Source: Lepidodermella squamata
Lineage: Eukaryota > Animalia > Gastrotricha
Direction of reading: 5' to 3'
Length of the DNA: 64,000 nt
NCBI GenBank assembly: GCA_047495785.1
Contig: JBLDXI010000015.1
Span: 310,001 to 374,000 of the forward strand
The notes below the pieces were generated by a model. It did no database searches. It had not been told where the DNA came from and was given only the letters and a program-made list of their open reading frames with translations. Position numbers and translations under genes: made by a program. This document shows, piece by piece, positions 2,661-24,740 of the stretch (position 1 is its first letter; each line of letters begins with the position of its first letter).

Positions 2661-3699
2661 AGGTAATTTTTAGCTACAACGACCTTCGGACCTGAAATAT
2701 AGTCCTGGTACGTCTCATGGACGACATGGGTGATTATTGAAAGCGGAAGACAGAATTCATTCAATGTGGGGCATATTAAGATTTATAATTCAGGTAAAAC
2801 AGGGTCATGTTAACCATAAAACTTTCAGTTCCGAGTCAGTTTCTGAGTCAGTAGTTCCCGATATTGTCACGGATATTAAGGTGGGCAATCGGTTTCAGTC
2901 CGTTGTGTCATTTTCTCGGTTTCTCCGGATCTCGTTGCCACACAATTGCAACACCGCACTCGTAGATATTGGGACGCTATCTCAGGCCGACGCAATGGTC
3001 AATGCAGTATTTTGATTTGCTATTGCACTTTTACGAATAAGGTGGATGCCCAATGTCCTGAGAAAAGATGGAAGCTGACAGAACACGACGTATTGAGGCA
3101 GGTTGCCTGACCGGCAAGAGCAATTTTGGCTCATTCGAACAATGCCGAACAATTTGATTGACCCTTTGTTCGCCTGTTTTCGAGAAATTTGGAGCCGAAT
3201 AGCTCCAAAACAACTCCTCAAGTGCTCAAAATCAGGTGAACAAAGGGGCCAAATTCAATTGTACGGCGTTGTTCGATGGTAAACGCGCTTTCGCGCTGCC
3301 AGGGGACTCATCATCTGTATTACTCGAGTACTGAAGGTGCTGAATACTCAGATGATTTGAAGTCTATGACGGGATGTCGATTGAGATGCGACGATTCCGA
3401 AGAGAAATCGCTACCTCACATCATAGATCACATAAAACCGCACATCATACCTGGAGAAAATAAAAGCGGCGCACTGTCATTTCAGCCTAGTTTCTTCTGC
3501 CCACTGCATACTTCTACGTCAACGTGCATCACCTGCCATGTTATCGATTACGCTAAAACGCAGCTGTATACCTATTGCATGCAGCGTAGTAATCACCCAC
3601 ATTTCCGACAATGTGAGTTTAGTATTGCTATTGCGCATGCTATTTTATGAGTTTTTTGCGGATGCAAGTTCTAGAATTGAAATCGCTGTATTTCGATAG

Positions 3700-5227
3700 A
3701 TGACATCTTTTAATTCAATCGCAATATGCAAGGTTTGTGGGTGCCTTGTGCCACCTCGCCCCTGTTATCAACCTCGAACCTGTGCGGCTTGTCAGAAATT
3801 TTTCCGCCGCAACTGTGAGAAATGGCAGCGGTTGAGGTGCAACCACGACTTTGATGCAACGGCTTTGGCAAAAGCGAAAAGTCCTCGAGATTGGTGCAAA
3901 TTTGATTGTTCGAAATGCCGATTCGAAGCATGCGTTCGCGCTGGTCTAAAAAGTAAATTATGCATTTCAGATCGATTTACATTTTGGATCCTCAGGCGAG
4001 ATACTCCGAATCTGGGAGCTAGATTAGCATTTGCGAATTTCGGCTGTTCGCCAAGGTTGTAGAAGCTCGCCGTTCTTCCTGGGGCTCAAATTCTTTCTAT
4101 TTAAATGTTACTAGACTTAAAACAACAAAAAGGATGAGAAATTGAACACTAAACATCAAAATGAGATGATTAGGAAATTACTGTTATATCAGTTAATGCT
4201 TCAAAGGTAAATATCTGACGAATGCGGAATTCAAAGTCAAACAAAATCTGGCGGTTGATATGCGCCCATCGCCAAAATATGGTTTTATAGTTGAGCATAC
4301 GCTGGAAAAAGCCATTGACCTTCAACTGCTTCTTCACGGCCTCGAGCAGGTATTTTAAAGCTCATCTTCACTAATGAATGCGTTCTACAGATCATCATTT
4401 CAACAGCTGCCGACGAGGAGCACCTTTGTAGATGCTCACATGTGCGATTTTGAGTTCATTAGAAAGCTTATTTTCGTCAACATGGCAGCATTCCTTCACC
4501 TCGGCCGAAAGTTTGGCTGCCTAATGCTGGGTATGGCATTCGATTTTTTGTAACACTGTTGCTTTTCAAAATTTGCAGTTATTAGAAAATTTCAACTTGA
4601 GCGAATCTGATGTGCAATCGCTGCTAGTTCGAAACTGGAAAAGCGTCACAGTAGCCTACTCGTCTCTACCGAGCACTAGCGGCGGGCTTTTAGCCAATTC
4701 CAGTGTTTTACCCAGTCTTCTGGACAATTTTCCAGAAGTTATGGTAAAATTGACACTTTTCCCACTATTCGCATCAAATATATCTCTTTTACAGCCGGCC
4801 AGAGCTGCTGAGAGCCAAGTTTCGGAAGCCATGAGCGAATTGAACCCAAGCCTCATCGAAATAGCTCTGATCTCGTGCCGCCTGTTTCTGCGAGGTATAA
4901 TACTGCCTTAAACCTTGAATAATCATTTCTATACTCGTTAGTTACGTTGTATTTGAAGGTGCTAGCAATTGTGATGAGTCACTTGCCGTGAAAGCAGCGC
5001 GAAAATGTGTTGACACGGCTTTTGCTTTGATCTGCCACAGGCTGCACGGCCAACGAATGGCGCAAGTGATGAAGAAGGTTTTGGAAGCTGAAAACCTCAT
5101 CGGCTTGACTTCGCGAGTTATTGACGATTGCAGCGTCGCAGTTATGAAGAAACTCGAGGCTTCAGTTAGCCACGACGAAAGGGCACTCGGCATCAAGTTC
5201 ACGCTCGGTGTGATTGACAAGATGTGA
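3700..5227 (+). CDS. Divergent nuclear receptor, paralog 1 (six exons)
   Basis: Exon 1 encodes CKVC..CAACQKFFRR..CNH..CSKCRFEACVRAGLK. Approximate exons 3700-3952, 4207-4349, 4407-4531, 4586-4743, 4795-4894, 4959-5227 with GT-AG introns. LBD signature-like FxLSESDVQSLLVRNW. Confidence 0.88.
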
Positions 5228-9894: not shown

Positions 9895-11177
9895 ATGACT
9901 GAAGTTGCACCGGCACTTCCGAAATGCAGGGTATGTGGCCTGGCCGTGTCTAGAAGGGGGCGTTTTCAGCCCCGCGTTTGCCACGCTTGCCAGAAGTTCT
10001 TCCGACGGAACGCAGATCATTACCTGCAGTTGCAGTGCAACCACAAGAAAGGGAAATCTGGCGAGTCGCAAAACAGCGCAATTCATCGGCGAGGCATGTG
10101 CACGAAATGCCGTTTCGACCGGTGCGTCAAGGCTGGGATGAAATGTGAGTATTTCTGAAAAGGTAATTATAACCGAAAAAAATGCGTCCCTCTCCCCATG
10201 CAAATATCCAGGTAAATATCTAGAACAGATGCTAGGAGCTGAAAGGGAAAATATCGAGCGAAGTCCTCAGTTGACGGATGGCCTTGATCTCGAAGAAGCT
10301 CTCAGGCTAGCTCTCGACACACAATTGCAGCTTCACGACCTTGAACAGGTTTTTAACGATTCATTATCGACAACTCTGACGACTTTGTTTTCGCAGCTTC
10401 CGCTAAGGAAAGCTCCCGAATCATCGGATTTGAGCGATGGCAGAGTCATGGCCGCACTTATGTTTTCTAATGTCATTGCGTTGATGCGACTGAACATCTC
10501 GTTCTCAAAGTTCATGTCGGGTAAAATTCTATGATTTCGGATCTACCTCCAATCTTTTTGATCTCATTACAGAGGCGTTTAGATTAAATGAGAGCGAAGT
10601 ACGAGTACTGATGGCTCGCAATTGGAAAGACATCACGGTTTCGTTTTCTGCTCTGCCGGGGGCTTCGGGTCGCTTTCTCGTGCATCAAGACGTTCTCCCA
10701 GCATTTCTTGATGTGAACCCTGAATTCCTAGTGAGTTTGCGCTTGATTTCATCCATTGCAATTCGTATTCCTTGTATAGCCAGCGAAAGATGCGGAAACG
10801 AAACTTTCTGTGACATTGAGCAACTGGGATCCTACTCTCGTTGAAGTTGCTCTCTTTACCTGTCGGCTGTTTTTCAGAGGTTAGCTATTGATGTTTATTT
10901 TTTCATTTTTCCGAATTCTATTAAAGGTGATGGGGAATCTTCGGCGTTTCTCAGAGCTCAGAAAAGAATTGAAACAGCGTTCATGATGATCTGCTCGAAG
11001 CTTCATGATTCCGAAATGGCACGGACTTTGCATGAAATAGCCATCGCTGAAAACTTGATAGCCATGACTTCGAGCGTTATCGACGAGTGCGGAGCTGCTG
11101 TTCTCCGGCGGCGAGAAAGGACGATGTCCGGCGGGGAGGTCAAGATAACAAAGTGCATCTTCAACGTCAAAAAATGA
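9895..11177 (+). CDS. Divergent nuclear receptor, paralog 3 (six exons)
   Basis: DBD CRVC..CHACQKFFRR..CNH..CTKCRFDRCVKAGMK with donor gtgagt at ~10145. LBD exons lie in ORFs 10145-10534, 10611-10844 and 10983-11177. Confidence 0.88.
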
Positions 11178-11751
11178 TAAAATGACTGGCAATTGTAATT
11201 ATCCTCTATTGCAAAAATGCAATCAGACTAACTATATCACGCACTGCGGGAATATTCTAATATGGAAACTTGGAAAATTCTGGTTAAATAATATTTGCGT
11301 CTTGCAGAGCGTACTTTTATTCATAGATCTATAGAGCCGGATTCCAAGAGGATGGAAATTGAGCGAGTTTGCATTATAGTTTCAGAAGAGCTTTTATGCA
11401 AATTCGGGGCACACTCGAGAGGTTCTAAATTTTTCAACTTTGGCTCACAGCGACTCGTTAATTAACGGTGAGGAAAGCTGAAATTGTTTAGCGGACTGTT
11501 TACCGTCAAAAAAACCGCCGAAGGTTAGTTCTCCGGCGTCCACAAGACCATGAATCACAAGACGTCCAGGTGAGGCCGCTTTTCGACCTGTCCTAAATTA
11601 AATGTGCTAAATCTACTCGGCAGCAGTAGACACTGATTGGTCACGATATTATTGGAAGACTGTTTGATCCTGTTAAATAAAAATTCGAGGACTCTGGAGA
11701 CGGACGCGACTGCCGCTCACGAGGGACTGAAAACTGAAAAGCTTATGTAGT

Positions 11752-11860
11752 CGAAAAAAATAGCACCTACACCGTGCCGCACGCCGTAGTGCGACCGTAG
11801 CAACACCGTACTTTTGAAATAGCACTTATAAGCGCAGATAGCACTTTCAGATAGCACTTT
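11752..11860. repeat. Left terminal motif array of the YR element
   Basis: CCGT(A/G) motifs at 11772, 11784, 11795 and 11806; ATAGCAC at 11760, 11819, 11838 and 11851. Confidence 0.75.
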
Positions 11861-12082
11861 TAGATTGCATTAGGATGAAATTTCTAGAAAAGCATGACAA
11901 ATACTCCTTTCTCCTCGAAAAAGATTTATTCTTTCATATCTTTTAAAACAATTCACCATTTAAAACACAGAATAACTCTTCAGCACAATGCAACAAATAA
12001 CAAATAAATTTCTCAAATCAATAAAGCTCTGAATAAAGTACAAGTTCTCAATTGGTTCGCTTGGAGCGAACGATATGGAATA

Positions 12083-14400
12083 TCACTTTTTCGGAGGTCT
12101 TCCGCGCCGTGTGCCAGTAGAACCACTGGACAATGAAATCAGTGAATTAGCAGAAGCGCTCCTGGAATCGCGACTGGAACTTCTTGAACTAGAAATCCCC
12201 CTCTCAGATTCCTCCGTCGACACAGAACCGGCCAAATTTTTCCGCGGTCTACCTCGCTTTGCGGCAGTTTTGACTTTCGGAATCGATTTTTCGTCACTCA
12301 ACTCAGCATCTTCACTCTCATCAGCAGACTTTGCTGACCGAGTTCTGCGACGTGGATAATTCATTGCTTCGCTAATCAGTCCTTCGTCAGAGGTATTTCG
12401 GCAGTTCGGTTTCGCGATTTTCTTCGTTCGCGACGATGTTTGACTAGAAACTGAGTCCTTCTCAGCCTCGGACTCGGCGTCAGTTTCATCGAAGTGATAA
12501 CGCGTTGTCATAAATGAAAGCTCACGAGTTGCCATCGTTTCTTCGATGAAATGGCCCATCTCGGCGTGAGTATCAGGTGCCATAGCAAGTTCGTAAAACT
12601 TACGACCAACGCCAGCGCTAATAAGAAAAATACTTTATAAGCAAGATAACACAAGCGGAAAGATTCACCTGTGGACCATGACTTTGTTAAACCACTTTAA
12701 CTGCATCTCATCTTTGCAGGTGTGGGCAAATATAGTCTGGCAGTGTTGGCGAAATTCGGTGAAGCCGAAGTGCTTGTCCCTGTATGTCTTCTGAAACACG
12801 TCATTGCATATGATTCCAAGTTCTTCGGACGTCAAAGCCGATCCATTAGGTTTTAGAAAAAGGCGTTCCTTGTCGCTCAAGCGCTGAGGTCGGTAGCCTT
12901 CAAGATAAGTCCTCAAATGCGAGTGCAATTTGTCAGATATATTGACAAATCCGTCGTTGTATGTCGCCGCTTTTTGATCAGCAACATGAACCAAAAAAGT
13001 CTCGTTATCAACCTTTCGCGCCTTCAGAAATTCACCAACTTGCATCAGCGTCAGAGCACCAGGTCTAATCATGCACCTAAGTGCTAGACCGAAGGCAACG
13101 TAGGCCACAAAAGTCTTGAAGTCTTCGAAGTTTAATGCCCTCTTGGACATAAGTTTTCCGGCTTTATCGCACAGCGAGTCAAAAACAGTTGATACCTCTG
13201 AGTAAAGAGGAAACTTGCCACTATGCATTAATTCGCTCAGCTTCACTCTACGGTGTGCGTCGTCTAGCTTGCAGCCCCGCGAGAAGGCAGTATAAGCATT
13301 CTTCAAATAAGCAATGAGCTTCAGGCGTTTACGATCTTCATACGGCAGATTATCGCCCAGTTCAATAAACTGCAGGAATTCGATGAAGGCGCCACACATG
13401 CCTTTCTTTGTGCTGTAAGTGACCTTTTTATCAAAAGCTTTCTCTAGAGCCCTCCAACCTTGCTCGGAGTAAATCGACTCGAGATAGTCAAAGCCACATG
13501 CTTTGATGATGTTTCGAACGTATGAAACAATTTTCTGCACAGTTGAACTGGCACTGTTCGCACGGCTGGACAGCTGGTTGTTATGCGAGTCATCAAACCT
13601 ATCGCATATAAGGTCAACTTCGCTCTTAACACTCTTCTCCGTCAGAGGATGAACGCGAGATACCGACGCGATATTTTGCCCGTGATTGTTGTTGACTGTG
13701 ACGGACACAGCTGGCGTTGGAATTGCAGGCGTAGACTTCCCAGCTGACCCCGGCTGATTTGCTCCGTAATGCTTAAGGCGGGCTTTTCTTGTTGCCTCAG
13801 ATAATGCCACCTTAATCTCAGCATCGGTTCGATCAACGTGAGCGAAGCAGGCCCGAGGAGATGACAAATGTTTGCGCAAAACAGTAGTATTGCTCAACTG
13901 TTTGTGGCAATCCGGGCAGTTCCGACGAAGACCGACGTGACGTTTCCTAGTGCCGTTAGTTTTCTCGCGCAAGAATCGCCCAAATTGTCTCTTTTGCAGA
14001 CTGCAGTGATGACCAGTTTTGTTAGACTCAGCCCTGGATTGAAGCGGTGGAATGGCATTTAAACTCGCTTGATGGGGAATAACAGGGTTAGTAACAAGCT
14101 GCCCTTCCCGACGATTCGAAATATTGATAACAAGAACCGTTGAGGGGTGGATGAGCTTTGCAGCTATTTCTAGATCTGCATCTGACTCCAAGGAGATTAA
14201 ATCACCATCAGAATCTGTTTAACGAATTAGTTTTCCTAGAACTAGCTCATTGCGAAAGTTGAATACTCACCCCAAGTAAGCTTAAAAGAATCAATATCGA
14301 AAGTAGTTCTCACGGCGTTCTTTAGATGCTCGAATGATGCGCTTTCAAGGGAGGTTATTCGTGTATTTCCGTTGTGTTTCAACTTTGTGTATAAAAACAT
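12083..14400 (-). CDS. PB1 + zinc finger + tyrosine recombinase + AT-hook protein (~736 aa, 3 exons)
   Basis: Exons 14400-14271, 14214-12669 and 12617-12083 (GT-AG introns of 56 and 51 nt) give 2211 nt in one frame. YR catalytic motifs: IRPG (R), VADQK (K), TEFR (R), MVH|SAGVGRKFY (H, Y). N-terminal PB1 OPCA motif FKLTWDSDGDLISLESDADLE; CPDC..H finger; C-terminal KRGRPRK and RRGRPPKK. Confidence 0.88.
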
Positions 14401-14499
14401 TCTATAATGTAGTAGATCAAAGATATTTATCAAAGAAAATCACATTTATATTCGCTTTTGCCAAGCCTTCGCGCCTCAAACTCTCGCGGCGCCTCTTGC

Positions 14500-15785
14500 T
14501 TAGATGGTTTTCATTTTGGCCAAGCAACTTTGCAGAGTTAGATCTCCAAAATAGTCTTCGTACTTATACCGCAACTTCGCACATGCGTTGATGAAATTCC
14601 CTTCAGTTAGATGCAATTTTTGTCTGACCAGCAAGTTAGCAATTCGTTGAAGACGACGAAGTTGCCCACTCGTAAACTTACCAGGGTGTTCCACCTTATC
14701 TCCTAGAAGTAGCACGGGCTTCGACCGGGTGCGACGTGTCAGGTAGCTAAAGCAATTGAAGTCATTTAGGTAACCTGCGAAACTGATGAATCTTACCTGC
14801 ACGGTGTCAGAGCAGTTTGATCTTGCTGCCTAGAAGTTGAAGGAGTTTCAAACGATACTCTTCTTTTCGACGAACTTCGGGGCGTCTTCCGCCTTTCTTC
14901 ACGGTCTGGAGACAACGAAGGCGATGCCGTAGAAGAAACATCCGATTGCGCAGAAGAAGTATCCATGGAGGAATACGATGATGTTGAGAGAGACCGAGAT
15001 CGTGATCTAGATCTCACTCGCGACCGCTTTGAAATGATAGGCGACGGTGAACGCGCAGCCGATTTGGATCGTTGTTTTCTCTTTCGTTCATTTGAAACAT
15101 GTTCGTGACTTCTGGCACGGTGTCGGGGAGCAGCCGGAGTAGTATGTTTTCGTGAACAGTAGCCACCATCAGCACCAGGTGGCGGATGAATTGGCTGCTG
15201 AGCTAGTTGAACCAAATGCTGTGGTGCAAGTTGCTGCGCTGGCTGTTGAACAAACTGCAGTACTGGTTGCTGCTGGGCCGGTTGCTGAAGTTGCTGCAGG
15301 GATGCAAGTTGCTGAGCAGGCTGTTGAACAAACTGCAGTACTGGTTGCTGCTGGGCCGGTTGAATTTGTTGCGGAGCTGTTTGCTGCTGAGCAGGTTGCT
15401 GAACTGGTGGAACAGGAGGTGGATCGACAGGGATAGCACCACCTAAAGCTGCGACCATGGTGGCTAAATTAGCATTTTCAGTCGCCGGGGTTGATTGAGC
15501 ACCTGCGATTGGAAGCCCGCGAGGAGCAGGACTATCCTCGACTACAATGATAATTTCCACATCTCTAACTTCACAGATGTAGCGAATCATGAGCTCTATG
15601 TCGCCGTCCGACATTAGCTCTACTCGATGATGATTGAACTGCGCATAAAACTTCAAGGGAGTGCCCTGATCTAGAGAGTGGAGGATCCGAAGAGATTCCT
15701 CAAAATTTACGAAATCAGTTTCCGTAATTGGGAAGAAACGCAGTTTCTGCTTGTAAGCAGAAAAACCCAGATAGTTGAACTCCAT
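14500..15785 (-). CDS. PB1-like + Q/P-rich + RS-rich + putative Myb/SANT-like protein (~411 aa, 2 exons)
   Basis: Exons 15785-14797 and 14746-14500 (50-nt GT-AG intron) give 1236 nt in frame. N-terminal LKFYAQFNHHRVELMSDGDIELMIRY..VEIIIVVE resembles PB1; C-terminal FTSGQLRRL...LTLQSCLAKMKTI resembles a three-helix DNA-binding domain. Confidence 0.75.
15200..15400 (-). repeat. 78-bp coding tandem repeat (QPAQQQPVLQFVQQPAQQLA)
   Basis: ggctgttgaacaaactgcagtactggttgctgctgggccggttg occurs at 15241 and 15319. Confidence 0.85.
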
Positions 15786-16130
15786 AATCGCAAAATCGCC
15801 TAAAATGGATACAGGTTAAGCAAATGATTATGAAAGAATGGTTTCATTGTGATAAGATACTGGTTTCACCATTTACACCTCACACCTGACGAAAAGCTAT
15901 TGACTTCCGGTAGGAACATGTAACAGTTGTGCTAGTTGAACTCCGAAGGTTGAAGCCGGCGCGCGGAATTTAGTCACGCGGGCGGATGAAGGCCACAATT
16001 AATTTTTTTACTTTTTATTACTATTATCATTTCCAATTTATTATAATATGTTTTTATCAATACCAGAGCCGATTGCCCCGCTTTTAACGCGCATGAATTT
16101 AATATTGGGGTATGCTTGCGCGCTGTTAGG

Positions 16131-16244
16131 ACTCACCGTAGCACCGTAGCACGAGCTTGCGCACCGTACTGCTACCTAATAGCACTCACCGTAGCGCTGC
16201 CGTAGCAAAACCGTAGAACTGTTATCTGGGTGCTATCTTATTCG
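16131..16244. repeat. Right terminal motif array of the YR element
   Basis: CCGTA(G/C) at 16136, 16144, 16164, 16189, 16200 and 16211; ATAGCAC at 16179 and its inverse GTGCTAT at 16230. Confidence 0.75.
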
Positions 16245-16988
16245 TATAATGACATGCCGACACGCGAGATAGTGAACATTAGTCCATTTTCTGGCCGAAC
16301 GCTGAACAAATCTTTCTTCAGATTGTTTGATTCTTTTATTTCAAATTAAAAAAACGCGGAAATTATGATGAAACGAAACGACGAATTCATGGAATGCACG
16401 ATTTTTATTAGCCCATATTGGACCCTTTAATCCTGAAAGCCGGTATCAGGCATTCAATCACTATTGTGACTAGAATCATGGCGAAAGATGCGCGTGTTAG
16501 GACACGAAATCTTCGGCCGAATTATTCTCACGCAGTGCTTCTTGCTACCTTTATGGTGCGCTATTTTCCACTTCGACGCGCAGAGATATATTTCATATTA
16601 TTCAAATCAGAAAAATTGATGGTGTTTTGTACGGTTCGCTGTTAGTTGTTTCAATGTTTTATTGCTAGATAAAAGTCGTTTAAACAGCCACGAAATATTT
16701 ATTACGGACAATGAATGAATTCTCTGTATTTAGTACAAATAGATTGATTCCATTTCACTTTGTTAATTGTTAATTGTAATGATTACCATTGTTTCTTACC
16801 GTGAGATAAAAAATCGCATTGATATCTGTTCACGATCATCATGGTGATTTTCAATTTTGAAACGTTAAACACCGGCGTTTTACCATTAGTTGTTTAGCCC
16901 TAAACATCGGTGTTCAGCTATTAGATTCAGAAATTTACCATGGCGATCCCGAACGGACTTATATCGAATTGATTCCATTTTCTTGACG

Positions 16989-18806
16989 TTATTCACCTTC
17001 GAGCGTGAGCCTGATGCCTAGAGCTAAGTCTGCAGAGCCGGACGTCGATGTGAGTCGCTTCAAAATCGCAGCGCCGCTATTCGCCAGAGCTCGCGATGCC
17101 ACGTCGACGAGTTGTTCAACAGTGGAAACATCCCGCATGACCTTTTCCACTCCAGCGCCGTGCAGCTTGTAGCAAATCATGGCGAATGCAATGTCGACAC
17201 GCCTACGCGCTGTTTGTATACCATCCGAATCCCCACAATTGCCTGTATAGGTTCGAATAACGGTAAAAAGTCATAAACAAACTTATGCGACAACTATTAC
17301 TGCGGAGGAACAGTCGGCACGTGAGAAGAGCAAGTTCGATGAAGCTTGGATTCCATGCGCTCATGGCGTCTGATAATTTGTTTTCCGCAGCCGTGGCCGG
17401 CTGAAAAAGGGAGAGGGCCCAGTCATTAGGTGGAAGAGTTTAACGTAGTCGTTCCTACGGGCTACTAAAATTTAAACCACGACTTGACCTCTCAACCTTG
17501 GGCTACTATGTATTAGCATGAGACTTACAGTAGGTCTCATGACTATTAGTGGATGGGCTACTATCGGAAAAATTACGGTAACAATATTTTGAAATCATTG
17601 TAATGAGAAAAGTAAAATCTCGACTGAAGGAAAAAATTGCGCCGTATTTTAGCTTTGATAAAGTTGATGTATAATAATTGTTATCGTTACCAAAACCTCT
17701 GGGAAGTTGTGTACGAAACTGGGTAGAAGACTGGAATTAGCTGTGAGGCAGCCACTGACGCTCGGCAGAGAGGAGTAAGCCAGAACAACACTCTTCCAAC
17801 GAACTTCCAGGCGCTTCACGTCAGATTCGTTCATTTTGAAACACTCTGGTAAATTCATGTTTAAAAATTATTCTTCACTGGTTTTAAAACATACCCTGAA
17901 TTTTGTCGCAAAACATTCGGCTGAGTCGTAGATAATCAACAATATGATCGCAAAAGAGCTTTTTAATGACCTCAGAGTTGCAATAGTTGTCATCTACATA
18001 GGTTTTCCTCATCGGCATCTAAAACATAAAACTGGCAATTCAAAACGCATAACTAGATTGTTCAAACTACGTGATCGAGACCGTGGAGCAGCAGTTGAAC
18101 ATCGACAGCTTTTTCCAGCGTATCTTCTACAATCGTACCAGCCAAAGACGTTGGGCCCGAGTGAATGGCTACGCCTTTTCTCGTATGCTGCATCATGAAT
18201 TTACCTGGAGCATGAACAATTATGAAGGTGGTTAGTGGCTAGAAGTCAAATGTTTTTTATTTCCACTTTGACCTTGCGAACCGGGGCTGCGATACCTACT
18301 CTAACGCGTCGCTTCATCCGATGTACCCAGACTTTCAAACAAGGAAGGGGTAAGGGTAAGTATTTCGACAAATACTTATACATATAAAGATAGATGCACG
18401 ATAGCATTTGAAAAATTCAAAAAAGCCACCGTAGACTGGACTTGAACGGGACCATCGCTACTAGTTTGAACAGCTACAGTACTAGTTTTGAGATTCTGAT
18501 AGCAATGCATGTTGGGAACTTACTTCTCATGCCGGCTCGGATGCATCGTTCGAATCGGCACTTCTTGCACATGCTACGCCGCATGTCCCTCGTGGTTATA
18601 GGCTCGTCAGCACTTACGTGTTTGTGGTTGCATTCCAGTGTTTGCCACTGTTCGACACAACGCCTGAAGAACTTTTCACACGCGGCACAAGCTCGCGGCT
18701 GGTAGTTGGGGCGTTTCGTCGCTACAAGACCGCAAACTTTGCACAAGCGCCGAGGAGGTTCGATTACCTCAGAGAAAAAAGAAGTATCAGCTTCAAACGT
18801 TGTCAT
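16989..18806 (-). CDS. Divergent nuclear receptor, paralog 4 (six exons)
   Basis: DBD CKVC..CAACEKFFRR..CNH..CKKCRFERCIRAGM. Exons ~18806-18524, 18205-18073, 18017-17895, 17847-17691, 17400-17300 and 17243-16989 are all open in frame. Closest to paralog 2. Confidence 0.87.
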
Positions 18807-19947
18807 TCCCACTTATAATGCTACTGAATTCAGTTAAGCCTAGAAAAGTTAAAAAGCAATAAATAATTGATCTTCGATTTGGGCTCACGTAAGCTTTTAA
18901 CGACGGCTATTAGGTTCCATATAAGGTTGAAGGTTGTATTCAATTACTGGCTCTTAGAAATCCCTAAAAACGTCAACATTTGAGGTAGCCATTATCATTC
19001 CATTGAATTGATGCATTGCCCTGCCGAAAAGATCTAGGGCTTGGACACAGTATCGGACAAGGCGCTTGGCTGCAAAATGCTCTGAAAGAGCACCGCTCGA
19101 ATTATCGGACAGACACACGCTGAATTTATCAAAAGCTGCGGCACATTAGAAGAAGGAAGTCTGATGTTATTCTTGAGGGAAGACATACAAAAGGATAGAG
19201 ACTTAAGGAGACTGGACAGGGGCTGGACAGAGTAAGCCGGAAATAGATGAAGAAACAGAGGAAAGGAAGCGGCAAGCAAGCGTTGAGCAGGCAGTGTTCC
19301 GAGTAGGAGGAAGGGGAGGGCCACATGCCTTTCCAAAGCTTTCGAATTATGCGCGCAAACAATTGTAAGCGATTGAAAAAGTTCAGGTGAAAGAATGCTA
19401 GGAGCAAATCGAGGCGGCGGGACTGAGTCATAATCGCAGGAAAGAAAACAGAACCAAACAGGGTGCGAAGTACAGGGGTGCTGGGGTGTCGCGACACCCC
19501 AGCTCCAGGACTCCAACCAGAGGAAGGCTGAAAAAAACCACAGGGGGGACCCTTTGGTTTCTTCGGCGGGGTCCTAGAAAACAGGTAGAAAACACCTCAG
19601 CTCCCGGATCCTACTTCGCACACTGGAACCAAAGGTTACGACGGAATGAATGAGTGTCGGGTAATCACACAAAATATGTGAAGATAAAATCGATGATGGC
19701 GACACGTAAACCAAACACATAAAGCATGAATGCTGAATTTAGAAATAAAAAATCCGCAGAGATGCAGAGGGAGAATTCAGAAATGATCGGCGGTGGATTT
19801 ACAAACAGTCAGTTCGAGACAAAAAGCCCCAGGGAGATCTTTGGGTCCAATAAATTATGGGCTCAGAGAGCGAAGTAGGACAGCCGAATTGGTTGGGATA
19901 AGGGCAGATCGATTTATGGGTCCTCCTTTGGTCTTTGACTGAATTTA

Positions 19948-23112: not shown

Positions 23113-24740
23113 TCACGAACAAGGAATTCCCAAAGTGAATTCGACGGCTAAGGCGAGTTCCGCGCGGCTAGATTCTGCTCCCCGCCGTTTTATAACAGCC
23201 GTGGCGCACTCGTCAACAACTCGCGCCGTAATCCCGATAAGATTTTCGACAATGGAACTTTGCATCCTCACACGACCGGAATTGGATCCATGTAGTTTCC
23301 AACAGGTCATTTCAAATGCCTTATCGACACAATCCCGTGCAGCTCGTAAATTCGCAGATGTTTCGACTTCATCTGGATCTAGGAATGTTTTTGAATCGGA
23401 AATCCAAATGAGTCACGTAATCATTTAATTTACTTTGCAAAAACAGTCGACATGGGAAGAGAGCTGCTTCGATGAGCGACGGGTTCCATTCTCCCATGGA
23501 ATCAGCAACTTTACTGCAAGAGGCATTAGCTGGCTATATAAATTGTAAACATTATGACGGACAACAAAATGAAATAACTTACTAAAAGTTCGGGGTTGCT
23601 TTCAAGAAAAAACGGAAGAATATCGTAATTCGCCAGTAAGCATCCGCCGGTGCCTGGAACAGCCGAGTAAGCGACCGTGATAAGTTTCCAGTTGCGAGCA
23701 AGCAGGGTATTAACTTCAGTCTGGCTCAAGTTGAAAGATTCTTGTGAAATGATTTGTATAGTTTTCATTATTGATTATGCCTAAACCTTCAAACCTTGAA
23801 TGTAATTCGAAAAATTCAAGCCGAGACGCCGTGGTTGCACTTCATTGGCAGCTAAAGAAAAATTGTAGTATTCGGGCTATTTCGTTATTTTGAGTCTCAC
23901 ATGTTCGAAGCCATGAAGCTGTAGCTGCACATCAATTGATTTTCTCACAGTTCCCTCAACTAGCGAATACTCCATAGCTGACGGGAATTTTTCTATTTCC
24001 ACTTCAGAGCCAACAAAAAATCTACCTATTATAGAAACCAGGCTTCAAAAAATACAGTGGGTTGCCATAATGTTTCGTACACCCCACAAAAACCGTGTTT
24101 TTCATCCCCAATGAAATCTCTTCAGCCTATATCAATGGGGCCCATAAATTATTACTAACAATTTTGTTCGGAGCAGTTTGAGCTCAAGAACTCGACAATC
24201 GGAGCAAAGGATAGGTCAGGGCATTATCGATTCGTCAACCGATTGATGCTGATTTCACATATATTGATTGATGGAATATTAGCGAATATTAGGATGATCC
24301 TAAATTTCCAGAGCAGCAAAGCTCGTGTCTTCTAATTAAATAGGCATTGCTGATTACTAATCCGAAAGCAGAACTCGAATACGAATTTCGACTGCAAAGT
24401 CGTATTCGAGTTCTGCTCTATCCGAACTGTTGCTCCACGTTCATAACTTACTTCGCATGCCTGCCTGCAGGCATCTATCAAAACGGCATTTCGTGCACAT
24501 AGACCGCCGCTTAGCCCGATCGTCCTGCAGTTCTGCAGCAGCCCTTGGTTCGTATTTATGATTGCATTCAAGTGACCGCCAAATCTCAGCATTTCGTCTG
24601 AAGAACTTGTGACAGGCCGAGCAAACTCGGGGTTGATGCGACTGCCGCCTCGGCACCGGAACGTCGCATGCTTTGCAGTTGAGGTAATTTTTCGTCGCTT
24701 TAGTGGCATTTGAAGATCCTGGTAAAATCCCCGTCGACAT
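23113..24740 (-). pseudogene. Nuclear receptor paralog 5, probably frameshifted in exon 3
   Basis: DBD (CSACHK..CNH) and exons 2, 4, 5 and 6 look intact. Exon 3 (~23851-23795) is 57 nt versus ~124 nt in paralogs and reads LPMKCNHGVSA-stop. Confidence 0.7.

Follow-up and report, generated by a model that had tools for sequence, protein, structure and literature searches.

Does the recombinase of a small mobile element in the gastrotrich Lepidodermella squamata work with a partner encoded by the element itself? To our knowledge, little is understood of the tyrosine-recombinase transposons of eukaryotes (Cryptons and kin), with no accessory or assembly factor described apart from a peptidase in some cases. 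The question is raised by a 64,000-nucleotide (nt) stretch of contig JBLDXI010000015.1 (hereafter, the window), in which a 4,503-bp element carries two genes, one for a recombinase headed by a PB1 domain and, upstream of it, one of 411 amino acids (aa), here called gene 2. The first-pass annotation of this DNA had proposed that both proteins begin with a PB1-type domain, that the recombinase oligomerizes through its own domain, and that the product of gene 2 docks on or caps it as a directionality factor or repressor resembling Xis. We find that gene 2 is a conserved helper gene of the element and that its N-terminal domain is probably of the PB1 type, and we weigh below how it may act. The window is eukaryotic, with ~42% G+C and introns of ~50 nt. 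Joined exon models of both genes were used for translation, pairwise profile comparison and dN/dS (the ratio of nonsynonymous to synonymous rates), and the search, family, fold and structure tools were run on single exons.

Gene 2 lies within a mobile unit

The two genes are arranged head-to-tail on the minus strand within 16250-11748, with gene 2 first behind the 5′ terminus. The boundaries of the element are placed at 11748-16250 because we take one contig of X1, a public run and the sole one with this DNA, to be the empty site: this single contig fuses 11747 to 16251, with 4,503 nt skipped and AA in between. The reading draws on one contig only, in which the shorter side of the joint is 30 nt. 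At the filled site, the flanks are joined to the element by AT...TA, compared to AA between the flanks in the empty-site contig. The depth of the empty-site contig (55) is similar to that of the filled site (about 60), which suggests that the insertion is heterozygous or polymorphic, or that an excision left a footprint. The element looks young, given that neither gene is disrupted and that the population includes an empty site. A precise empty site and no reverse transcriptase are found, as in a Crypton-type mobile unit, and these two genes are the only ones inside the element.

With predicted splicing, gene 2 encodes 411 aa in two exons (15785..14500, minus strand) from an ATG at 15785. The recombinase gene starts 99 nt further downstream and encodes 736 aa in exons 14400..14271, 14214..12669 and 12617..12083 (minus strand). 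We find each of the parts that the first-pass annotation described in the 411-aa gene where it had placed them, namely a basic KQKLR stretch (residues 11-16 are YKQKLR), an LKFY stretch (residues 44-66 are LKFY..RVELMSDGDIELM), Q/P and RS tracts and a C-terminal domain. The element and the parts of gene 2 are as follows, where L001, L003 and L004 are relatives described below.

11748..16250, minus strand: whole element, consisting of 5′ terminus, gene 2, recombinase gene and 3′ subterminal repeats (empty-site contig; 5′ end motif)
14797..15785, minus strand: gene 2 exon 1, aa 1-329 plus 2 nt of codon 330 (open reading frame; donor GTAAGA)
14747..14796, minus strand: gene 2 intron of 50 nt, GT..AG, phase 2 (sequence; the joined frame gives 411 aa)
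14500..14746, minus strand: gene 2 exon 2, aa 330-411 plus stop (alignment A6 with L001, L004 and L003)
15531..15785, minus strand: gene 2 N-terminal domain, aa 1-85, candidate PB1-like beta-grasp (conservation in L001 and L004; structure ranks; hhalign)
15162..15428, minus strand: Q/P-rich low-complexity tract, aa 120-208 (39-nt tandem repeat family; absent in L001 and L004)
14868..15161, minus strand: RS tract, basic and Ser-rich, aa 209-306 (composition; not in L001 or L004)
14832..14867, minus strand: short conserved motif KRRVSFETPSTS just before the last intron, KRLSY..TPSTS in relatives (translations of the window, L001 and L004)
about 14503-14685, minus strand: conserved basic C-terminal domain of ~60 aa (alignment A6)
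14401..14499, minus strand: spacer of 99 nt from the gene 2 stop to the recombinase ATG (sequence)

Within the spacer at 14401-14499, a TATAAAT lies about 45 nt before the recombinase ATG; the two genes could be co-transcribed in an operon-like manner, or transcription of the recombinase could start from an internal promoter. The short motif reads KRRVSF..TPSTS in the window, with counterparts at about 1690-1745 of L001 and about 1970-2025 of L004. The KRRVSF version of the window would fit the RVxF pattern of protein-phosphatase-1 docking sites.

Gene 2 is conserved in divergent relatives

Homologues of the recombinase number 3 in 5.8 billion proteins, and their contigs were fetched. An exhaustive profile search of 1.84 billion representatives with gene 2 returned only fragments of L001 and L004, the latter locus coming from this search. 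Three repeat proteins that also scored were judged spurious, as their scores were summed over many stretches. In the relatives that keep gene 2, the recombinases are 44-70% identical to that of the window, and gene 2 occupies the same place, after the conserved 5′ terminus. In L001, whose recombinase is 45% identical, a homologue with three exons follows the conserved terminus and precedes the PB1-recombinase, and L004 shows the same order, with the homologue upstream of its PB1-recombinase. L003 (recombinase 70% identical) starts with the last 20 residues of a gene 2 homologue. The spacer between gene 2 and the recombinase is 99 nt in the window, 73 in both L001 and L004, and about 35 in L003. 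The remaining locus, L002, has a fragment of a MULE/FAR1-type (Mutator-like element) transposase open reading frame (1-391) directly upstream of a recombinase copy that has neither PB1 nor gene 2; this copy looks 5′-truncated or nested and is uninformative on gene 2.

The homologues differ in length from the window protein, at about 240 aa versus 411 aa, and neither the Q/P nor the RS tract is present in L001 and L004. The Q/P tract also varies in length among the X1 copies (77-nt skip), and K+R account for 26 and S for 32 of 116 residues in the composition of the RS tract. Both tracts are lineage-specific filler. When L001 and L004 are compared, the proportion of nonsynonymous differences (pN) is far below that of synonymous differences (pS) both in the N-terminal domain (pN 0.30, pS 0.74) and in the C-terminal domain (pN 0.25, pS 0.71), and both domains are therefore under purifying selection. 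These observations establish that gene 2 is a conserved helper gene belonging to the element.

The co-occurrence of the two genes had been proposed as a check in the first-pass annotation, and it is borne out: gene 2 is found in L001 and L004, its tail in L003, and the window copy falls within the empty-site boundaries, such that absence from other copies does not refute the pairing. The same data bear on whether gene 2 might be non-functional, either a captured host fragment or a chance open reading frame inflated by low-complexity repeats. Two thirds of the window protein is indeed Q/P and RS low complexity. Word-index protein searches with the gene 2 N-terminal region and with exon 2 found no homologue, where the length filter may hide short open reading frame fragments, and just two homologues were obtained from 1.8 billion representatives. 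However, at a recombinase identity of 45%, the related elements still have intact open reading frames that match in their start and share the region of the last intron; dN lies far below dS, and gene 2 sits inside the mobile unit. We regard this reading as nearly refuted, with only a very small chance of being correct.

More copies of the element are present in run X1, with identities of 80-99%, including one with an internal deletion and some with a different length of the Q/P tract; no other copies were found inside the window. In a diverged X1 copy (about 90% identical), 12870-14155 is deleted internally (1,284 nt), with 38 other letters instead. This copy may be a non-autonomous or differently organized member of the family.

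The N-terminal domain of gene 2 resembles PB1

The natural reference for the N-terminal domain of gene 2 is the domain at the head of the recombinase, which is a near-canonical PB1.

14117..14400, minus strand: recombinase PB1 domain, aa 1-76, with a 56-nt phase-1 intron at 14215-14270 (Pfam PB1 on both halves)

The position of this intron is common to all four elements, and the two halves were scanned separately. Aa 6-43 of exon 1 alone match positions 5-46 of the Pfam PB1 profile (12.6 bits), and aa 2-23 of exon 2 alone match positions 50-71 (15.5 bits); in L003, the first half alone gives an E of 0.0023 (18.3 bits). The window recombinase carries YTKLK and W-DSDGDLISLESDADLE, and its N-terminus combines a profile match with the lysine and OPCA motifs of PB1. 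On this point, the first-pass annotation, which had assigned YTKLK and a full OPCA motif to the recombinase, was correct.

PB1 domains comprise types I/A, II/B and I/II, with examples in p62, aPKC-Par6, MEKK2/3-MEK5 and Cdc24p-Bem1p. Like PB1 (PF00564), the gene 2 domain is ~80-85 aa long, with a beta-beta-alpha-beta-beta-alpha-beta pattern, an SD-x-D/E-L at the start of helix 2 and conserved basic residues near the N-terminus, and PB1 entries provide the best structural matches for both of its AlphaFold (AF2) models. Unlike PB1, it goes undetected by hidden Markov models (HMMs), is without the first acidic OPCA cluster, and has lysines that are not demonstrably the canonical strand-1 lysine.

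The structural comparisons place PB1 first by two routes. With Foldseek against the PDB, the best match is the PB1 of Cdc24p (E 0.37), and the top 50 also include PB1 entries of MEKK2, NBR1, MEK5 and aPKC/Par6. VIA-align, a structure aligner independent of Foldseek, was run against 48,161 representative PDB chains. For model 1, it places PB1 entries at ranks 1, 4, 5, 9, 10 and 45 (Z 5.9-3.6; 6/top 50). For model 2, PB1 entries hold ranks 1, 2, 4-8, 10, 11, 20, 23, 27, 28, 32 and 33, corresponding to 15 of the top 50 and 9 of the top 11, with a best Z of 5.2 and with ubiquitin, SUMO, UBX and RA lower in the ranking. On these models, the structural evidence is one of specificity of ranking and not of strength. 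Atlas feature and shape searches list PB1 and PB1-like clusters among other alpha/beta folds; the feature search, based on a language model, points to plant clusters of this kind.

A more direct comparison is provided by hhalign, in which a three-sequence profile of the gene 2 N-terminal domain was set against a four-sequence profile of the recombinase PB1. The two are collinear, with a local score of 21.8 (P 0.0016) and a global score of 16.0, and the local match, which extends from strand 3 to helix 2, is in register with OPCA. The real scores exceed those of all 120 column shuffles (shuffle maxima of 19.3 local and 8.2 global). Slices of the recombinase core (31 in number) give maxima of 14.4 local and 11.8 global, as compared to 22.3 and 19.1 for the real pair under the same settings.

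Several observations weigh against a PB1 assignment. Pfam PB1 (PF00564) and PB1-like (PF26130) go unmatched even at E<=10 in window aa 1-95 and in exon 1 of L001 and L004, and PDB sequence and profile searches with the domain return no PB1 chain, only chance-level rows. Both AlphaFold models are weak (predicted local distance difference test, pLDDT, 54; predicted template modelling score, pTM, 0.41-0.43) and show helix-strand-strand-helix-strand, with the first hairpin unmodelled; their confidence was no higher when exon 1 of L001 and L004 was included in the alignment. No structural Z score reaches 6, and the aligner itself calls such values common. Finally, the homologues of the domain are three sequences only, which makes for thin profiles. 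On balance, we consider that the domain is probably a PB1-type beta-grasp that has diverged too far for HMM membership. The PB1-like start attributed to gene 2 in the first-pass annotation thus survives as a probable fold, carried by the structure rankings and the profile alignment, and falls short in that no PB1 HMM matches it.

Candidate binding faces of the two domains

We next compare the residues through which the two domains could bind. In gene 2, the first acidic cluster of OPCA is absent, as had been pointed out in the first-pass annotation: QFNHHR stands in its place in the window, and LYNGRK in L001 and L004. D60 is the sole invariant acid of the second cluster among the three sequences, and the domain thus has no OPCA motif. 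On the basic side, K12 and K14 are invariant in the same three sequences. Because these lysines fall in the turn between strand 1 and strand 2, we can only infer that they act as a canonical basic face.

The recombinases fall into two kinds. Those of the window and L003 have KLK on strand 1 and a full OPCA motif (W-D/I-SDGD..S-D-x-DLE; DSDGD..SDADLE). In those of L001 and L004, G/V/L replace the lysines of strand 1 and OPCA is half-degenerate (DFGGKP..D-x-DE). Given the loss in L001 and L004 of these lysines and of half of the acids in OPCA, a two-faced, self-polymerizing recombinase PB1 is not conserved, and the oligomerization suggested in the first-pass annotation does not hold for the family as a whole. 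On the enzyme, an acidic face persists, and on the helper, a basic patch; this favors a heterotypic contact between helper and enzyme over capping of a polymer.

The polymer model deserves to be stated in full. The recombinase would polymerize head-to-tail through a PB1 with both a lysine and an OPCA face, and gene 2, having one face, would cap the polymer and thereby serve as a directionality factor or repressor like Xis. The KLK and full OPCA of the window and L003 recombinases suit this model, as does the missing first acidic cluster of gene 2. Yet the L001 and L004 recombinases are without the strand-1 lysines and have OPCA half-degenerate, while gene 2 is kept there, and gene 2 is unlike any directionality factor or repressor family (no Pfam match). 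We consider this model improbable. The Xis comparison itself finds no footing in sequence or family matches, and the gene 2 protein, at 240-411 aa, has a separate conserved C-terminal domain.

A different possibility is that gene 2 is a genuine gene of the element whose product makes no contact with the recombinase. Its N-terminal domain would then be a generic ubiquitin-like or small alpha/beta domain that self-associates or binds a host factor (chromatin, nuclear import or phosphatase), and the protein would regulate transcription of the element or target choice on its own. Consistent with this are the missing PB1 HMM match and OPCA motif, the weak models with Z below 6, and the ATP-grasp-like and other alpha/beta folds that are interleaved in the model-1 and Atlas lists; the conserved KRRVSF / KRLSY motif could moreover be a docking site for a host factor. 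On the other hand, neither shuffled nor natural-sequence controls match the collinear similarity that the domain shows to the PB1 profile of the recombinase itself, PB1 entries and not other beta-grasp families head both structural rankings, and strict pairing with a PB1-headed recombinase in divergent elements would have to be a coincidence. We judge this explanation to be unlikely, albeit one to be taken seriously. Docking of the gene 2 and recombinase domains, PB1 to PB1, is for its part plausible from sequence.

A recruiting helper as the proposed role of gene 2

Our proposal for the element as a whole is that gene 2 encodes a helper whose PB1-like head docks on the PB1 of the recombinase and whose basic tail recruits in the manner of Harbinger ORF1. 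In this scheme, the basic patch of the helper would dock front-to-back with the recombinase PB1 at its acidic OPCA face, which is the part of that domain best kept across the family. Docking would bring the basic C-terminal domain of the helper into the recombination complex, where it would probably bind DNA or chromatin at the subterminal CTACGG/GTGCTAT repeats. The helper would then be a recruiting or assembly factor, as ORF1 is for PIF/Harbinger transposases, rather than a directionality switch like Xis. 

The C-terminal domain has Y, FG and KM invariant across the window, L001, L004 and L003 (alignment A6) and is net basic, with 11 K+R versus 4 D+E among 62 residues. A PDB profile search with it returned only chance-level MreB and Fur rows, an Atlas feature search gave no usable match, and Pfam showed no Myb/SANT match for this domain in the window, L001 or L004. 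By eye, the spacing of aromatic and hydrophobic residues is similar to that of Myb/SANT; no tool supported this reading, and we do not claim it.

The recruiting scheme also meets with contrary evidence. No DNA-binding family was found for the C-terminal domain, either in Pfam at E<=10 or in PDB sequence and profile searches. At the N-terminus, K12 and K14 align to the strand 1-strand 2 turn and not to the strand-1 lysines K6 and K8 of the recombinase, and the N-terminal domain of the window gene 2 is net acidic. Among the copies in run X1, the diverged one ceases to match the window at 14393, just upstream of where the recombinase begins, and some copies may lack gene 2 or have a replacement for it. 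Taken together, we see the arguments for and against this whole explanation as evenly balanced.

Comparison to known systems

Mobilization of PIF/Harbinger elements requires ORF1 in addition to the transposase (PMC2836001; see also PMC9710019, PMC9392472). Gene 2 is comparable to the Myb-like ORF1 in encoding a conserved partner of the enzyme that is itself non-catalytic; its product ends in a small basic domain, and subterminal repeats are present in the element. The differences are that the catalytic partner is tyrosine-recombinase-like here and a DDE transposase there, and that gene 2 has no Myb/SANT match. We know of no PB1-PB1 contact in Harbinger. The similarities to Xis and to the directionality factors of phages and conjugative transposons consist of an accessory gene beside a tyrosine recombinase gene and of repeated arm-type sites. 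In contrast to these factors, gene 2 is eukaryotic, much larger and made of two domains, with no sequence or family similarity and no sign of directionality control. As judged from anatomy, a recruiting helper like Harbinger ORF1 would be the better fit.

Among transposon proteins, PB1 has a precedent in plant Mutator-like elements (PB1-MULEs) and in MUSTANG-B (PMC4948706). Unlike the element described here, these are plant DDE elements with a single PB1, without paired PB1 genes and without a tyrosine recombinase. With Cryptons, the element shares an intron-containing tyrosine-recombinase-like gene, the lack of a reverse transcriptase, a precise empty site and a short length, and some CryptonS elements encode one additional protein (PMC3212892). 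In the survey of Cryptons, the known extra protein is a C48 peptidase and the extra domain is GCR1_C, with no PB1 or PB1-like partner described (PMC3212892). The recombinase of the window differs from those of Cryptons in matching neither the DUF3504 nor the Phage_integrase HMM. The element brings together three known kinds, namely a putative tyrosine-recombinase transposon, a two-protein transposon and a transposon protein bearing PB1.

A conserved helper that shares a docking fold with its enzyme offers a hypothesis, testable by mutation, for how recombination complexes assemble on repeat-rich ends. Because the element looks young, it could serve as an experimental system. A broader and rather doubtful extension is that PB1 forms a portable docking system for transposition, in which enzyme and helper are each headed by PB1 and assemble through it, and in which the helper design (a PB1-like head with a small basic tail) has been exchanged between unrelated transposon superfamilies of this genome. 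If a PB1-headed helper does recur in unrelated superfamilies, accessory modules would be swapped among mobile elements independently of their catalytic cores.

Remainder of the recombinase

Downstream of PB1, the recombinase consists of a zinc-finger leader, a catalytic core and a C-terminal tail.

13847..13984, minus strand: zinc-finger leader FGRF...C-x2-C...H...C (regex match; weak zf-C2H2; kept in P0002, L001 and L004)
12083..14214, minus strand: recombinase exons 2 and 3 (intron 12618-12668), with catalytic core and AT-hook-like tail (homologues P0001-P0003)

Between PB1 and the catalytic core, the leader (FGRF..RHPGLGR-C-x2-C..H..C) is strongly conserved and is seen in L001, L002, L003 and L004. 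The conserved blocks of the core are IRPGAL (R), QKAATYNDG (K), FRQHCQT (R and H) and VHS-x6-FY (H, with Y at +9), which, by inspection only, appear to fit the R-K-R-H-H-Y signature of tyrosine recombinases. Phage_integrase and DUF3504 were not matched by the core in Pfam at E<=10, and a PDB sequence search with it gave chance-level rows only. The C-terminal tail (12086-12340) is rich in Ser and acidic residues and includes two AT-hook-like RGRP(R/P)KK motifs, for which the Pfam AT_hook match is weak (E about 1). A metagenome scan with the recombinase alignment found nothing.

Element ends and neighboring sequence

Arrays of short repeats are observed at both ends of the element.

16120..16250, minus strand: conserved 5′ terminus ATTATACGAAnAAnATAGCA, followed by CTACGG(T) repeats (alignment of the window, L001 and L004)
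11748..11870, minus strand: 3′ subterminal repeats (GTGCTAT x4, then CTACGG/CACGG x4) and 3′ end (sequence; joint at 11747)

By alignment, the 5′ end with its CTACGG repeats is kept in distant relatives, at position 960 of L001 and position 1251 of L004. The sequence CTACGGTG occurs 6 times in the window, compared to 0.49 expected, and half of these occurrences (3/6) lie within 16120..16250. When the 20-nt conserved terminus was scanned against metagenomes, 27 loci were obtained, of which 0/27 encode either protein, which marks them as chance matches.

The surroundings of the relatives hold other sequences. In L001, a 155-aa open reading frame (448-915) lies just outside the conserved 5′ terminus and is probably flanking host or other sequence outside the element. 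In L004, at 3289-3861, the recombinase frame is unrecognizable beyond the zinc-finger leader, and a gene of the Arf/Ras GTPase family comes next; the locus is either a truncated element beside a host gene or an element with a captured gene. In the window, a cluster of paralogous nuclear-receptor genes is observed at 9895-11200, 16989-18812 and 23113-23768, whose exons for zinc-finger DNA binding and for similar ligand domains are found on both strands, and the element is located between two genes of this cluster.

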